Under the pieces are notes generated by a model that saw nothing but the letters and a program-made list of their open reading frames with translations, made no database searches and had not been told where the DNA came from. A stretch of DNA of 63,019 nt, the filler included, from Guillardia theta CCMP2712 (lineage: Eukaryota; Protista; Cryptophyta), in assembly GCF_000315625.1 (NCBI RefSeq). It is 4 parts of 4 records of this genome, joined end to end, with 100 filler letters (N's around TTAATTAATTAA, not from the genome) between each part and the next. Parts side by side here need not be neighbours in the genome. Positions count along the whole stretch, not along the records: positions 1 to 29,542 come from NW_005434412.1; 3 more parts are not named here. One strand, given 5' to 3'. Position numbers and translations under genes: made by a program. Shown piece after piece: positions 4,238 through 11,383 of the stretch. The first letter of the stretch is position 1. Every line of letters begins with the position of its first letter.

Positions 4238-5591
4238 TCAGGGAGATCCTTAGAGAGGAGAGGTCACATGCAGAAGAACATCGTTTCTTGAGGCAAGCAT
4301 GGAGGTAGCCAAACCCTTTCACAGTTATGCGGCTGATGTTTGTGAAGAGTAAAGTCTCGGACATGTGAAGAACAGGCTTTCACTGGTCATGTTGTTCCAA
4401 TTGAGACGCAGCAGTTCTTCATCATCCGTCTCCTTCCATGCCGAGGCTGAGAGCCAAGTGCCTACTTGTCATTGAAGCTGGTGCCCAGATGACTTGATTC
4501 GTGCTCGCGCCGGCGCAAGGCACACTCAAACATCTACTCGAGCGTCTGTCCGTTGAGGGTACTCCATGGAAGGCTGCAGCAGGACTCGATGGAAAGGTCG
4601 CCCCTTTCCGCTCTTCTTTCCTTGCATCATCATTGACACGACGGTGAAGGTTGTACACTGCAACTTCAACAAGTTCAAGCAGCTATACTCCTATGTGACC
4701 CCGGGAAAGAATTGACAAAGTCCGAGGGTTGTTGAAATGCTGGATGTAAATATACACCACGGTTCCATTTTCTCATCAGCACAAACGCATGAGATGATCG
4801 TGACCGCTTTTAGAGGTGATGCTTGGAAAAGTCTCACACTTCCTCACACCCAACTCGATGTTTAGACACCTGTCTAAACTGAGAATGCACTGTGTCGCGT
4901 GACCCTTCAAAAACTGATCTCTGATCTGAGTCTCCTCTACCCAGGAGCATCTGTGTCCTTCCTACACAATTGATCATTCTTCCTTCCTCTTTGATCCTTC
5001 ATCATCTACTCCTCAAAAATTTTGTTGTCTTGCTGTCCCTTTCCTCGACTCTTGTCAATACTGATCAATCTGAAAACTGAAATTTTTCTCTTGACCTGTA
5101 AGGATTTTTGCAGTCTTGCATACGAAGGAAATCCATCTTGGAACAATTTAAGCATATTACTCTGTTTTTAGGTTGGGTTGCAAATATTCTGAGAATTGAA
5201 GATGAAGCCTCTTGAGGAAAACAAATTCTGCATCCTGCAACTCTGTTCAAAAGGATGATAGAAAAAACATTAAGTTGAGATGTTACCTGACGGAATAATA
5301 TACACAGAACTTGAAGTTAAACATGTTGCCCCACTGCTTAAAAACTGCTCCAAATTCAGTGAGTAAGGTAACGTAGTTCAGTGAATATTAAGTCCCTACA
5401 GAGGAGTGTTCACAATTCGGGAAGGACCTGAACCTAAGTAACCTTCCCAGCCACCGTCACATCTGGAGGAATGGCTGGTTGCTGAGAAGAGTGTCATGCA
5501 ATATAGCCTAACATAACTTCATGCACATCACCTCAGGTCAAAGAATACCGATATGTCATTTTAATTTCGCTCCTCTTCTGTTTCCGTGCAG

Positions 5592-5630
<39 letters not shown>

Positions 5631-5742
5631 TTCCTTCCACTTGTGTCGCCCTGGCGATGCATGACTTTTTTTGCATTTGCGCTATTTTGAGATCCCGGCC
5701 GGAAAAAAGGGTCTTTCTTGCCTTTCTCCCCTTTTTATGGGA

Positions 5743-5866
5743 TCTCGGCGCTAATAACAAATACCTGTTTAATTATTAGTCAAATGGAAGAGAATTTCAG
5801 ATTTCTTTTTAGAGAGAGAGTACTAAAAAAAGTGTATAGAAAGAATTTGTTTTTTTAGCGCCGAGA
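5743..5866. repeat. Short inverted repeat (TCTCGGCGCTAA...TTAGCGCCGAGA) around an AT-rich spacer; MITE-like or regulatory
   Basis: 12-bp perfect inverted arms (5743-5754, 5855-5866) extendable with ACAAAT/ATTTGT; no TSD seen. Confidence 0.45.
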
Positions 5867-6030
5867 CCTTCGGTTACAAATTTTGTAGGTGCAAAGGCTC
5901 GCAGCCTTGCAGGATATGCATGAAGTAGAGAAGAGAACAAGAGAAGAGAAGAGTAGGTCAGTATATCATTCTAATGGTGAGCTCAGGTGCCTCCTTTTGA
6001 ATAGTGATTCTCCCGATCAGATCCTCAAGA

Positions 6031-8069
6031 ATGTCTGATCAAGGTTCTACCGTCGTTTCTTGATTGAGATATAACAAATCCTTCAGGGACCGTTGGAGTG
6101 TCAAAGAAAGAAAAAGTGAAGCAATATCTGGAAGCATCGATTCTTCCCTTTCTTTCCCAGGCACTCACAAAACTTTGTGCTGAAGTAACTTCAACCATCT
6201 TGTTCCACTTGATGTGATGAGAGACACAGGAGCCGTCCGACCCTTTCGAGTGGCTGGGCCGCTACCTGATCGAAAACAATCCGCGCGCCACTCGAAAGTT
6301 CGATCACAAAGAAGCATTGGTGAAGCTGTGCTTGAAGAATCAACTCTTGACTCTTTCTAGGTCTTGAAATTGGCTCAAGGAGATTTCTTCGGCGAGATAG
6401 CGTTGCTGCATGGAAAACCGAGACAAGCTACTGTGAAGGTCAGACAGTTGCAAACGAACACCCAAGAGTACTTTCATCTCGTCGTTGATACTGCTCATAG
6501 TCTGTTGGATCATCTACTCTTTTGGTTCTTTCTCGCGATGCTTTCAACCGCCTTTGCGGAAGTCTCTTCGACATTCTGCAAAGAAATATTGTGATACTCA
6601 TTCAATAGAGTGGATGCTGTTCTGAATGACGCACAGGGAGAGTACAAGGATGTGGAGTTTATGGAAGAGGAGCCGGAGGAGCATCTGGACGTGAGAGACT
6701 CTTGGCTCCCTGTGGCCTCCAACCTCCCACACAGGACTACGGCGGAGTCTCGGAGGAAGAAGATTATGAGGAGCCCCCGCCGCCTCCCGTCAACATGCGG
6801 AGGTTTCAAGCGAATGCATGGCGATGCCTTGTTGGTTGAAATGCTTTGAAGGGGAAGAAGAGATACCGTCTACTTGGCCGCGACTAAGGCAGGCTTCTTA
6901 CCTTGCTGACCTCATGCCTCACACTCAGCCAGGTTGAGGATGATTGGAGACCTCCGGAATTTCCCAAGACGGACGAGGAACGTGATAGAATACACAAAGT
7001 GAGATCAATTTGCAAGGATGGACAAGGCTCTTCTGTCTCAACTGAGCTGGTTTTTAGTACATTGAAAAAACGGCTTTGCTGTCCTACCTCGATCCATCCT
7101 CCAAAGACTTGGTCAATCTTTCTTTCTCCTCTCACTTGCATGACATCAGTTTGTGCAGGTTGTCACAGCGGTGGAAAAGCTAGAATTCGATGACGGGCAA
7201 GACATCATTAGTCAAGGAGATGAAGGTATGTCAAGGCTCTGCTTTGGCTGCCGGCTGACTCAATCTCTTGCCAGCTGATTATTATTACATCTTGGACTCC
7301 GGCAAGGCAGATGTATGTTCTCTCGCTGACGTTTGCTCCTGCTCGCTCATTCATGTCAAGGTTTTGATCGCAAAGCCGTTGGGCTCCGACCCTGTCAAGG
7401 TCAACGAGTATGGGCCAGGTGCTGCCTTTGTGGTCGCCTGGTGCCATGCTGGTGATGTGCTAGCAGGAGGTTCCTTCGGCGAGCTTGCGCTGCTCCATGG
7501 CGATAAGCGAATCGCCACCATCCGCGCCACTGAGGTCCTTAAAACTGCCCCAGGCTTAGCCTCTGATTGCTCGCGTGATCAGCACTGTGTGACGTGGGCC
7601 TTGCAACGTGACACCTTCAGAAAACTGATGATGCAGAGGTTTGAGGAGCAGCGATTGAGAGCGTTGTTGGTATCTGATTCGGACCTGCAGTGGAAAGCAA
7701 GCCTTGAACGAGAGGGTTCAGTTCCTCTCCAAGGTTTTCTTCTTCACCGCGAGCGAAGCCTGGTGATCTTATTGCAGGTGAACATCTTGAAGGAACTGGA
7801 CCACTATGAGAAGTTCAAGATAGCAGAAGCCATGCAGGTAGACGTCAACAAACACGTTGTACAAAGTGATGTAAACGATGCAGATGAGAAAGGTGGAGGA
7901 TGACGAGGTCATTGTGAAGGTGCTGTGAGTTTAGCTCGTACCTCGTTTGTCTCACGGAGGTTGACATCAGGAGGGAGAACCAGGCAGCGAGTTCTTCATC
8001 ATTCAGAGTGGAGAATGCCACGTTTACAAGCAGGTGCTAGTTGATGTCACTCAATGCTTGCTCAAGTAG
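6031..8069 (+). CDS. cAMP-dependent protein kinase regulatory subunit-like protein with Dpy-30-type docking domain and circularly permuted CNB-B (about 19 exons)
   Basis: In-frame spliced model. Dpy-30 motif VKQYLEASILPFLSQALTKLCAEEPSDPFEWLGRYLIENNP; then FFGEIALLHGKPRQATVK...FNRLCGSLFDILQRNIGEY; inhibitor site RRGRRDTVY; full CNB-A with SFGELALLHGDKRIATIRA. It ends with VNILKELDHYEKFKIAEAM...EGEPGSEFFIIQSGECHVYKQ and a stop at 8067-8069. Confidence 0.85.
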
Positions 8070-8464
8070 ACAATATCTCGAGCTAGAGGCTGATCCAGCA
8101 AAACTTTAAACAAAATATTATGGTATCTCGCGCAAGAGGCTGATCCAGCAAACATGGATGAATTACACACTGATGTGTCAGTGTTGAACCATAAAGCATC
8201 GTTTACAACTCTCGTGTCTCTCCTTTCCTGCGACGTCTTGAGTGCGGCATTGAAAGCGCGGCTGAAAGACCGAGGAAGCGCAAAAATTTTCCCATTCCTT
8301 GAGAGTCTTGATACCCTCGTAGAAGACGACCTCAGTCTCATGCTTTAACGGCGTCCTTGTCTCGTACTTACATGCTTCGTATGATATTCCAACTCCCTTT
8401 GCAATTGGTTGCAGCACAATCTTACATACACGAACTTGCTTGTATTGTTATACGTTCATCTTTG

Positions 8465-8755
8465 TACTATCATACTTGTTCTATCATTCTTGTCGATCGT
8501 ACCTGTACTATCATATTTATACAATCGTGCGATCATACTCATGCGATCATACTCGTGCGATCATACTCGTGCGATCATACCCGTGCGATCATACTCGTGC
8601 GATCATACTCGTGCGATCATACTTGTCGATTGTACTTGTCGATCATACTTGTACTATCATACTTGTCGATCATACTTGTACTATCATACTTGTCGATCAT
8701 ACTCGTGCGATAATACTCGACGATTCGATCATACTCGTGCGATCATACTCGTACG
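8465..8755 (+). repeat. 13-14-bp minisatellite (GATCATACTCGTGC and variants)
   Basis: Directly visible tandem array. Confidence 0.9.
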
Positions 8756-9100
8756 ATCTGTCTGCAATCTCAAGATCGGATTCACGATTTTTTTATTTGG
8801 AACCCTAGCTTCCCTTGATGCAGCCGCAAGGGCAGGAGCGAGGGAAGCAAGGAGCGATGAGACAGAGGAGACAGAGAAGAGAGGAGGGGGGGTCAGAGAA
8901 GTACGAAGAGATGAATGTAGAGGTAAAGACAGAGATGAGAAACTGAGAAAAGTTGAGGACAGGAATATGGATGAAGACAATTGGTGTCGGAGCTATCGAG
9001 AAACGATCTTGCTGTATGTTTGTGATCAATACCTTTGTCTGAATGCTTCACGTTCAGGCAGGTCAGGGCGACATGTCGCAAAAAGAATCTTTCGGCATAC

Positions 9101-11383
9101 ATGACGCTGGTGAGATCAGTCCGTGAGCATGCACGCACAAGTAATGACCTCTCTTTGGCAGCCTATCGCGTCGGGAGGAGCGAGCTGCTGGCATGGCTTA
9201 ACGAGCTCCTTCAGATCAGCTACACAAAGGTCTCCTCCTCTTCCTCCTCCTCTTTCCCCCTCTTCCCCATCTTCTTTCCTCTTTCTTCCACCACCACCAC
9301 CACCTCCTCCTCCTCCTCCTCTCCTCCTCTTCCTCCTCTTCCTCTTCTTCTTCCTCTTCTTCCTTTTCCTCTTGTTTCTCCTGTCCTCCCGTTCGGTGAC
9401 CCAGTCCAGGTGGAGCAATGCGCCAACGGAGCAGCATACTGTCAGATCATGGACGCAATCTACCCTGTTAGCAATGCTGATAATTTGGCGAAGAATTGAC
9501 GGAGCGGGACAGGGGGAGGTTCCGATGAAGCGAGTGATCTTTGATGCAAAGCTCGAACATGATTGTGTCAAGAACTACAAGGCATACAACGAGATGGATG
9601 GTCTGTCCAACTCGCTTAATGGTTGCTGTAGGTTCTGCAAGCCATTTTTGAGAAGCGAAACATCTCGAAACATGTCGAGGTGAGGACGTAAAAGATCAAT
9701 GCTTTCTTGCTGGTGACATCGTCGTTAGGTTGAGAAGTTGATCAAGGCCAAGGTATGGACGTCAAGCTGTTGGTCCGTTTCTGACGCTTTAAAAGCCGTT
9801 GGACAATCTCGAAATGTTGCAATGGTTCTGTCACAAGCTTATCTTGTCATAGTTAGTGACGTTGTACAGGTGCAAGCGATTCTTCGACCTCAACTACGCG
9901 GTATTCATTGCTGTCTCGCTTTCATCCGGTTGTTTGATTCGATGTAGGGCAACGAGTACAACCCGATTGAGCGACGGCAGGGCAAGGCAAGGTGATTGCC
10001 TAAACATTTGAGTCGCTTCGCCTCAATGTCATGATTTCTTTCTCCTGCTGCAGCCCAGCAGGCAAGGTTGCGTCTTCTGCAGCGCCGAAGGTGATGGAGA
10101 AAAAAAGTTCTCCTGTAATGAAGGCAAGCCCGTTGAGGTACACCTCCGCGTCTCATCCTCTCGGCTCAACAGAAACCCCCGCTGACCGTCAACACCAAAG
10201 ATCAGAGCCCCAGCACTGTAAGCAACATCGCCGTCGTGCTGCTTTGACTCCAATGCAGCCCATGAGACAAAAACCGATCAGGCCTGCTAGTGCTGGGCTG
10301 CAAAGAAGTCCAGGCAAGACACTGATAGCATCAACATGAACACCAATACCATCTCCATGATCGTCTCTGTCATCTCATCTCAATCATGATCTGAATCTTC
10401 TGAATCTTCTGAATTATTTACATGATCGTCGTTGTTTCGATGCTGATTCGATTGAAAGTGCCAGATGCAAGCTCGCGAATGGCGAACATGACAGCTGATT
10501 TCTCACACTTGGAGGAGCAACTTCATGCCAGGTAGAAGAGGACGGGAGGATGCCGCTGAAGTGACGAGGAGCGTGAAGTCAGACGACGAACTCCCGACTG
10601 AAGGAAGAGGTTCAGAGGCGATGACTGTGATCCTGCTGACGTGCAAGTCCACTAGCTACAAGAGATGCAATTGAGTGTCGACACACTTGAAAAGGTGAAG
10701 GCGACAACAAGATGAAGAGATTATGTCATCTGATATGCGATGAAGGAAAGGGATTTTTATTTTCACAAGCTGAGAGAGATAGAAGTTCTTTGCCTTCAGG
10801 TCTGTCTCATTTCTTCAAAATATTTTCTGAAGATTGAACCGCAGTGCGAGGAAGGAGCTGAATCTAAAGTATTACATCTCCTCTCTACTCCTTACGTCTG
10901 CAACTTCTACCTCTTTCTTTCTTGACCCCCACCTCTCCTCCCTCTCCTTTCCTTCTTCTCGCTTTATTTATCATACGCGTCCTCTGCAGACCTTCTTCCC
11001 TCCCCGTTTCACGACACCTTATCTTAATAACTCTTTGCTTTTCTCGTTTTATCATCTGTTATGCTCTTCTTTCTCCTTTTCTCTTCTGTAAGTTCCCTCT
11101 CGCTCAAGCAAGGCAGGACACCATTGTATCCAAGACACTCGCCATCCTCTACGCCAAAGAAAACGAGGTCGCTCTGACCTCCTCCGCTCCTCTTACCCCT
11201 TCCTCAGACGCCCCCAACGGATTTCTTGGACGAGCCTGCGGATGTGAACGCAGAGGGATTGAGCGAGGACGCCCGACATGCACAGCAGGACGAGGGAGAC
11301 GAGGGAGCGGGAGAACAGGAGCAGGTAAGGGAGGAGGAGGAGTACCGGCAGGAGGAGGAGCACGAGAAGATGGAGGTAAGTGA
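9101..11383 (+). CDS. EB1: Microtubule plus-end binding protein EB1 (multi-exon, 3' end approximate)
   Basis: CH-domain motifs VGRSELLAWLNELLQISYTKVEQCANGAAYCQIMDAIYPGEVPMKRVIFDAKLEH; EBH motif KERDFYFHKLREIEVLC; ILYAKENE. Confidence 0.92.

Follow-up and report, generated by a model that had tools for sequence, protein, structure and literature searches.

Can a regulatory (R) subunit of protein kinase A (PKA) be built with one of its two cyclic nucleotide-binding (CNB) domains cut into halves that stand in swapped order along the chain? This question is raised by the gene GUITHDRAFT_156462 of Guillardia theta CCMP2712 (assembly of 87.1 Mb in 669 contigs), which lies on the plus strand of a 63,019-nucleotide stretch of DNA (hereafter the window, whose numbering is used for all positions). 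Few allosteric switches have been studied as thoroughly as the PKA regulatory subunits and, to our knowledge, in all known ones CNB-A precedes an unbroken CNB-B whose C-terminal lid is free; the canonical relatives retrieved here (222 of 222) likewise have CNB-A and then an intact CNB-B. In the Guillardia protein the order is a Dpy-30 domain, the half of CNB-B from beta5 to the C-helix, an acidic linker, the motif RRDTV, a complete CNB-A and, lastly, the half of CNB-B from the N-helices to beta4. The evidence assembled below makes it probable that this is a real, expressed receptor for cyclic AMP (cAMP) of the PKA R family, with a circularly permuted CNB-B whose halves are joined into one barrel.

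Joining the three-frame translation of 5400-9000 by GT-AG introns gave a 19-exon gene at 6031-8069 with a product of 390 residues. The translation is identical to a database protein (P0003, 390 residues, which is GUITHDRAFT_156462), recovered by an exhaustive protein search with the 211-residue open frame of 7268-7903 as the query; the databases label this protein as hypothetical or as ‘cyclic nucleotide-binding domain-containing’. The original prediction had read four blocks in one frame, connected by short introns, and the exon model confirms all of them in their places, with a correction for one intron: GT-AG borders are found in 17 introns, of 41-62 bases each, and the remaining one (6889-6932) is GC-AG. 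The predicted stop at 8069 also stood. The GT at 8034 is unused as a donor, and the frame continues for 11 codons after ...HVYKQ to the TAG at 8067-8069. Exon 3 (6230-6319) contains both the last part of the Dpy-30 domain and the start of the second block, so the point of fusion between Dpy-30 and beta5 does not depend on how the exons are joined. The features of the gene, with the support for each, are as follows:

6031-8208, plus strand: gene GUITHDRAFT_156462, start codon 6031, TAG 8067-8069, poly(A) addition at ~8208-8210 (RNA contigs, raw reads, identity to P0003)
6031-6043, plus strand: exon 1, MSDQ and one base (gene model; RNA joint 6043/6087)
6087-6184, plus strand: exon 2, first helix of the Dpy-30 domain (Pfam Dpy-30 profile 2-23; RNA joint)
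6230-6319, plus strand: exon 3, end of Dpy-30 and start of CNB-B strand beta5 (Pfam Dpy-30 profile 26-42; gene model, RNA)
6361-6438, plus strand: exon 4, CNB-B beta5-beta6 and phosphate-binding cassette FGEIALL...PRQATV at 6388-6435 (cNMP_binding profile 45-66; invariant columns)
6501-6590, plus strand: exon 5, CNB-B beta7-beta8 and B/C helices, ...DILQRNI (alignment with RI-alpha 313-374)
6637-6690, plus strand: exon 6, end of the C-helix, capping Tyr126 at 6643-6645, start of the acidic linker (gene model, RI-alpha alignment, Y126 invariant)
6735-6802, plus strand: exon 7, acidic/Pro-rich linker (gene model, RNA; model confidence below 50 over residues 130-171)
6852-6888, plus strand: exon 8, inhibitor site RRDTV at 6856-6870, followed by the GC-AG intron (gene model, RNA, family motif)
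6933-6998, plus strand: exon 9, start of the N-terminal helices of CNB-A (gene model, RNA, RI-alpha alignment)
7058-7111, plus strand: exon 10, CNB-A helices (gene model, RNA)
7159-7225, plus strand: exon 11, CNB-A beta1-beta2 (gene model, RNA)
7275-7312, plus strand: exon 12, CNB-A beta3-beta4 (gene model, RNA)
7361-7418, plus strand: exon 13, CNB-A beta4-beta5 (gene model, RNA)
7467-7534, plus strand: exon 14, CNB-A phosphate-binding cassette at 7475-7522 (gene model, Pfam)
7583-7638, plus strand: exon 15, CNB-A beta8 and B helix (gene model, RI-alpha alignment)
7691-7733, plus strand: exon 16, CNB-A B/C helix continuing into the CNB-B N-helix (gene model, RNA; AlphaFold2 helix 302-324)
7778-7837, plus strand: exon 17, CNB-B N-terminal helices (gene model, RNA)
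7884-7919, plus strand: exon 18, CNB-B beta1-beta2 (gene model, RNA)
7971-8208, plus strand: exon 19, CNB-B beta2-beta4 (to 8033), 11-residue tail, TAG 8067-8069 and 3′ untranslated region (cNMP_binding profile 13-32; RNA contiguous 7969-8210)

Is this order present in RNA? Four sequencing runs were mapped on 5850-8420 (with 5850-5963 left out as repeated), and one RNA-seq run of 2026 was examined as raw reads; 13 older runs, guessed to be RNA, contain about one-tenth to one-third of the sampled words, which matches the expectation for spliced RNA. Two RNA contigs from different studies (X1, 1356 nt, and X4, 1352 nt) list 15 of the 18 splice junctions, at the boundaries of the model, and carry the last exon unbroken over 7969-8210 and then a run of A; raw reads of X18 likewise pass into runs of A at 8208. 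Both the exon order and the stop near 8069 are seen in RNA. A back-splice from 8033 to 6361 had been named as something to look for; among the joints listed in the RNA contigs and reads over 5850-8420 there is no back-splice and no joint leaving 8033, and the RNA ends in poly(A) at ~8208 instead of running on into further exons. The gene is expressed in several studies. A Logan DNA contig (X14, 2719 nt) is collinear with the window over 5964-8420 and may derive from the assembly's own reads.

Partly spliced RNA of GUITHDRAFT_156462 is common in the data, and three transcriptome-derived ‘proteins’ (P0045, P0059 and P0001) come from this gene with introns retained (7535-7582, 7639-7690, 7734-7777 and others). 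Two of them, P0059 and P0045, were considered as paralogues and rejected as intron-retention products. One RNA contig (record 2 of X1) over 6015-6113 keeps intron 1, and the ~255 letters that follow 6113 in it do not resemble the window. This contig may be a chimera or represent a minor alternative isoform.

The next step is the identity of the two partial CNB segments. In Pfam, residues 16-55 match Dpy-30 (PF05186; E 3.5e-13) with 49.5 bits, where the cut-off is 22, and cNMP_binding is detected in three stretches (E 1.1e-40); when the exons are searched separately, 6361-6438 matches positions 45-66 of the cNMP_binding profile and the last exon positions 13-32, the half matches that had been anticipated. 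The back half of CNB-B comprises residues 59-126 (6293-6645), and the front half ends at 8033. A phmmer comparison with human/bovine RI-alpha (E 4.7e-53, far beyond chance) returns two segments, each collinear but in swapped order. More specifically, against RI-alpha (6no7_B, 380 residues), residues 101-377 correspond to 27-302 (linker, inhibitor site, CNB-A and CNB-B up to beta4), and residues 67-128 to 313-374 (the rest of CNB-B up to the C-terminal ...RNIQQY). BLASTP against a canonical fungal R subunit (P0084) gives the same picture, with 155-379 aligned to 94-322 and 71-133 to 333-395, and here the back half scores higher against the canonical CNB-B (64 bits) than against CNB-A (42 bits).

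Each segment is homologous to one of two adjoining halves of a single domain, and the two stand in swapped order, with the break at the beta4-beta5 hairpin. In a hidden Markov model (HMM) re-ordered by joining the family's front half to its back half, 221 canonical CNB-B domains span the junction with no insertion and typically with 5-8 positions deleted. No part of the CNB fold is missing, and the new ends carry a few (~5-8) extra residues. The RI-alpha alignment, the re-ordered HMM and the fragment test described below agree with the original prediction that the halves are complementary, no element being lost or duplicated. The linear order of the PKA R family (docking domain, inhibitor site, CNB-A, CNB-B) is not kept, and Pfam gives no match to a RIIa-type docking domain in P0003, Dpy-30 being found instead; some canonical protist R subunits likewise have no Pfam RIIa match.

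Can the halves meet in space? An AlphaFold2 run on the full-length protein with the family alignment (A1) has a mean predicted local distance difference test score (pLDDT) of 81.9. The back half reaches 84-97 and the front half 86-95, with less than 50 in the linker (130-171); a prediction of the monomer was among the checks suggested at the outset. In a two-fragment test, residues 56-130 and 316-390 were modelled together with cAMP in three runs, which agree in 100% of contacts: the interface score ipSAE is 0.83 in all three against 0.02 for the best control, with ~240 contacts and a partner pLDDT of 87. A score of 0.83 is attained by 51 of 78 solved complexes and by 2 of 108 mismatched pairs, a calibration made without ligand and therefore rough here. 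Either half paired with an unrelated protein reaches a pLDDT of 27-49. In the canonical CNB jelly roll, the strands of the front half are all bonded solely to strands of the back half. The closest contacts (366-369 with 100-103 and 74-77; 375-377 with 91-92 and 68-69) reproduce the canonical pairings of beta3 with beta8/beta6 and of beta4 with beta7/beta5. Confidence alone is no proof of packing, and therefore strand assignment served as the read-out in a deletion control: strands lie at 346-350, 355-357 and 365-383 in the full-length model, and DSSP gives none within 345-390 when residues 131-390 are modelled by themselves. The two halves are thus predicted to form one canonical eight-stranded CNB barrel.

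Structure searches with Foldseek and VIA are headed by R subunits, while single CNB domains of PKG score equally in VIA. The best two-domain superpositions are on R chains in the holoenzyme state (2qcs_B, Z 19.1, root-mean-square deviation 6.0 over 216 residues). Both programs align sequentially, and for this reason they cover residues ~162-384 and cannot display the permutation.

Does the arrangement recur in relatives? Searches with P0003, the family alignment and a distant member (P0010) retrieved 340 proteins in total, of which 54 are full-length proteins with a back half, a full CNB and a front half, and 222 are canonical (‘full, full’). The boundaries are the same in all 54 permuted proteins, and 48 of them end no more than two residues from the end of the half-domain, at variance with the idea that orthologues might possess a longer CNB array. 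Other cryptophytes have the same order: the named members are all cryptists (Guillardia, Hanusia phi, Rhodomonas lens, R. salina and R. abbreviata, Proteomonas, Hemiselmis tepida and H. virescens, Baffinella frigidus, and the plastid-lacking Goniomonas avonlea), and the remaining ones are environmental sequences, including the outer-clade P0010, P0167, P0073, P0077, P0027 and P0074, which all come from metatranscriptomes or metagenomes. Members of the family align collinearly over their whole length, and most terminate in ...C(Y/F)K(K/R)TLKF. A tree built from CNB-A and the re-ordered CNB-B (108 rows) gathers the 27 non-redundant permuted proteins into a single clade with a support of 97 (SH-aLRT), which is consistent with one origin. 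The independently assembled genome of Baffinella frigidus encodes Dpy-30, then cassette B, then the CNB-A exons, on DNA.

The front ends of the family vary, from Dpy-30 alone, through nucleoside diphosphate kinase (NDK) and Dpy-30 (P0168 of Goniomonas and P0027), to a PDZ-like region that replaces Dpy-30 in some members (P0064/P0065 of Rhodomonas salina) and is weak, below the Pfam cut-off. Members with other front ends are P0168 (Goniomonas avonlea), P0027, P0074, P0170 and P0064/P0065. The conserved core of the family is the permuted module.

Within this module, conservation of the two CNB-B halves equals that of CNB-A and extends to each residue of cassette B that contacts cAMP. Specifically, 25 family members share F77, G78, E79, I80, A81, L82, P87, R88, Q89 and V92 in cassette B; F274 to L279 (including G275 and E276), R285 and A287 in cassette A; and Y126, at the position of the capping Tyr of RI-alpha. 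As in the PKA R family, there are two CNB domains with a phosphate-binding cassette (Gly-Glu ... Arg-x-Ala-Thr) and an inhibitor site N-terminal to CNB-A. Arg-Thr-Ala-Thr is the mark of cGMP-selective PKG domains, and neither cassette here has it. The inhibitor site, RRDTV, occupies residues 166-170 with Thr169 as the P-site residue, which is Asn or Ala in most relatives; most family members carry RRx[N/A/S/T/C/P]V[F/Y] upstream of CNB-A. By sequence and by fold, the closest relatives are established R subunits.

A working scheme follows the known family. The RRxxV site and CNB-A would occupy and inhibit the PKA catalytic subunit, and cAMP at both cassettes would release it; because the halves are predicted to interdigitate into one barrel, each chain would bind two molecules of cAMP. 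The Dpy-30 domain would dimerise the protein and dock it on the amphipathic helix of an anchoring protein, possibly at the flagellar axoneme, and this docking role, like a possible flagellar location of the cryptist proteins, is proposed by analogy. What would differ is the geometry. With an acidic disordered linker of ~40 residues and a docking domain ~8 residues from beta5, the docking domain would sit directly on the CNB-B barrel, and the linker, inhibitor site and CNB-A would form a loop with both ends anchored on CNB-B. The inhibitor linker would be tied to the cAMP-capping C-helix, the lid of site B, so that closure of the lid could be coupled to release of the inhibitor site, a coupling that we infer from this arrangement.

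Several points weigh against the reading of this gene as a permuted PKA regulator. Binding of cAMP, its stoichiometry and kinase inhibition are all carried over from the R subunit family, and the PKA catalytic subunit of G. theta was not identified, no search for one having been made. GUITHDRAFT_156462 sits on a longer branch than its sister (0.36 against 0.13) and is without the conserved C-terminal ...TLKF of its family. The fold predictions and the pass in the fragment test may reflect a memory of the very common CNB fold; the front half still has a pLDDT of at least 86 in the model without residues 1-130. Finally, a canonical-order R-like gene with CNB-A, an intact CNB-B and short introns lies elsewhere in the genome (contig C165, locus L002, ~4084 to 3125, minus strand), and the permuted proteins therefore need not be the main PKA regulators of G. 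theta.

The alternative that survives best accepts the permutation and differs in how the barrel is closed: the back half of one chain would complete the front half of another in a dimer held by Dpy-30. The ~190 residues between the halves, including the disordered linker, make closure in cis and in trans both sterically possible. Pairing in trans is favoured by the position of a dimerisation module (PMC3494852) ~8 residues from beta5, and the fragment test predicts complementation between separate chains; the AlphaFold2 monomer, however, closes in cis with high confidence, and the data fit both modes alike. We regard an obligate intertwined R2 dimer, in which every site B combines a back half and a front half from different chains, as a tentative possibility that is on balance unlikely. 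If such a domain-swapped dimer exists, occupancy of site B in one protomer would be mechanically coupled to the inhibitor linker of the other; we know of no PKA holoenzyme in which such inter-subunit allosteric wiring is seen.

A second alternative retains a cAMP sensor and gives it another target, for instance an axonemal or nucleotide-metabolism partner. Two relatives (P0168 of Goniomonas and the environmental P0027) carry an N-terminal NDK and Dpy-30, which is the architecture of the radial spoke protein RSP23 (PMC3494852), and G. theta has, besides its separate canonical-order R-like gene, at least 139 CNB matches in its genome. On the other hand, RRxxV[F/Y] upstream of CNB-A is conserved across the family, the best relatives in sequence and fold are bona fide R subunits, and the best superposition is on a holoenzyme-state chain (2qcs_B), all of which makes a function outside PKA regulation doubtful.

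It is very improbable that the half-domains are decayed remnants of a three-CNB protein, which do not assemble and leave CNB-A as the only functional domain. Truncated leftovers are conceivable, because multi-CNB arrays and tandem R-R fusions exist (P0023, P0012, P0247 and contig C107), but the halves are as conserved as CNB-A down to the cAMP contacts of cassette B and the capping Tyr, their boundaries are identical in 54 proteins, and they are predicted to complement each other (0.83 against 0.02; pLDDT 87 together against 27-49 in controls). The order is almost certainly not an artefact of misassembly (such as a collapsed tandem duplication), of wrong exon joining or of two genes read as one: genome DNA runs, X14 among them, may be the assembly's own reads, yet RNA contigs of independent studies each show this order within a single molecule, Dpy-30 and beta5 are fused inside a single exon, and transcriptomes of other genera, the Baffinella DNA and a second G. 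theta paralogue agree, so that this explanation is refuted for practical purposes.

How, then, might a circularly permuted R subunit have arisen? G. theta possesses a second permuted gene (contig C10, locus L001, ~5610 to 3652, minus strand), which is 81-97% identical per exon to P0047 of Hanusia phi, ends in ...CYKRTLKF and has the same Dpy-30/beta5 junction inside one uninterrupted tblastn match; GUITHDRAFT_156462 is the faster-evolving, more diverged copy. Both topologies are present in G. theta, given the permuted genes and the canonical gene on C165. The genome also encodes an intronless frame of 843 residues (C107:9753-12287, locus L003) in which three A-B CNB units stand in tandem, with 42-47% identity to the Tetrahymena PKA R subunit. 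Tandem R-R fusions also occur among environmental proteins (P0023, P0012 and P0247), which consist of A-B, a linker with RRxxS and A-B, and have no docking domain between the units. An out-of-register cut from such an R-R string would yield back half, linker, CNB-A and front half, which is why an origin by duplication then trimming is plausible. In the tree, the tandem arrays fall among canonical R subunits and not beside the permuted clade; as they are not its sister, they were rejected as evidence for the ancestor, and serve as an illustration of a possible route, a model for a precursor. Of the functional permutation by duplication and trimming originally proposed, the permutation itself is thus supported and the reassembly of the domain predicted, while duplication and trimming stay at the level of the plausible.

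A run of 34 G (5595-5628) lies ~400 bases upstream of the start codon, and a tandem 14-base repeat (8462-8758, consensus TCGTGCGATCATAC, ~17-19 copies, 79-85% matches) begins ~250 bases past the poly(A) site. The next gene on the plus strand appears at 9035-9700 as exon-like pieces, broken by a CTC / 9-base repeat at 9232-9382; they recall the calponin-homology domain of EB1, and a Pfam search of the unspliced open frames of 9035-9683 gave no match.

The original prediction knew of no R subunit with this topology, and literature searches found no description of a natural permuted CNB domain, of the locus tag GUITHDRAFT_156462 or of PKA in Guillardia or cryptophytes; full-text searches returned only engineered circularly permuted fluorescent sensors. 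For allostery, the family would offer a natural experiment on how closure of the lid of site B reaches the inhibitor site, and on the role of a flexible linker between docking domain and inhibitor site. For protein engineering, it suggests that the CNB fold accepts new termini at the beta4-beta5 hairpin, which would be useful for split or insertion-based cAMP sensors. The permutation would be, in addition, a rare genomic change marking Cryptista, which could help to place orphan lineages near cryptophytes, and front ends with Dpy-30, alone or behind NDK, are a hint of cAMP signalling tethered to the flagellar axoneme.

Among the known systems near to the permuted protein are the mammalian RI-alpha and RII-beta subunits (PDB 6NO7, 2QCS, 1RGS, 3TNP), with which it has in common CNB-A, the inhibitor site and every element of CNB-B (VIA Z ~19 over 214-217 residues; phmmer E 4.7e-53), including conserved cassettes and capping Tyr. 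The mammalian proteins end with the back half of CNB-B (RI-alpha 313-374), whereas the permuted protein has it before the linker; they have a RIIa docking domain from which the inhibitor linker departs, whereas here the domain is Dpy-30 and the linker departs from the C-helix of CNB-B. With respect to the P-site, the Thr of GUITHDRAFT_156462 resembles substrate-type RII, and the Asn or Ala of most relatives pseudosubstrate-type RI. Canonical fungal and protist R subunits (such as P0084 of Dimargaris and P0207 of Tetrahymena) and the C165 gene have CNB-A and then an unbroken CNB-B, and the identity to canonical R subunits is ~40% over the linker, CNB-A and the front half of CNB-B, and 44% over the back half.

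Dpy-30 is a docking and dimerisation domain that is structurally similar to, and grouped with, RIIa, and in Chlamydomonas RSP23, which consists of NDK and Dpy-30, it binds the amphipathic helix of the anchoring protein RSP3 (PMC3494852). A Dpy-30 domain, which serves there for docking and dimerisation, is shared with the Chlamydomonas radial spoke proteins RSP23 and RSP2, and Goniomonas P0168 has NDK and Dpy-30 ahead of the permuted module, but the two Chlamydomonas proteins, unlike the permuted ones, are without CNB domains or an inhibitor site. The tandem R-R fusions and (A-B)n arrays (P0023, P0012, P0247 and C107) share with the permuted module the string B, RRxxS linker, A, B, from which the module could be cut with the loss of both ends; in these arrays the domains are whole, unlike in the permuted module, where CNB-B is distributed over the two sides of CNB-A.

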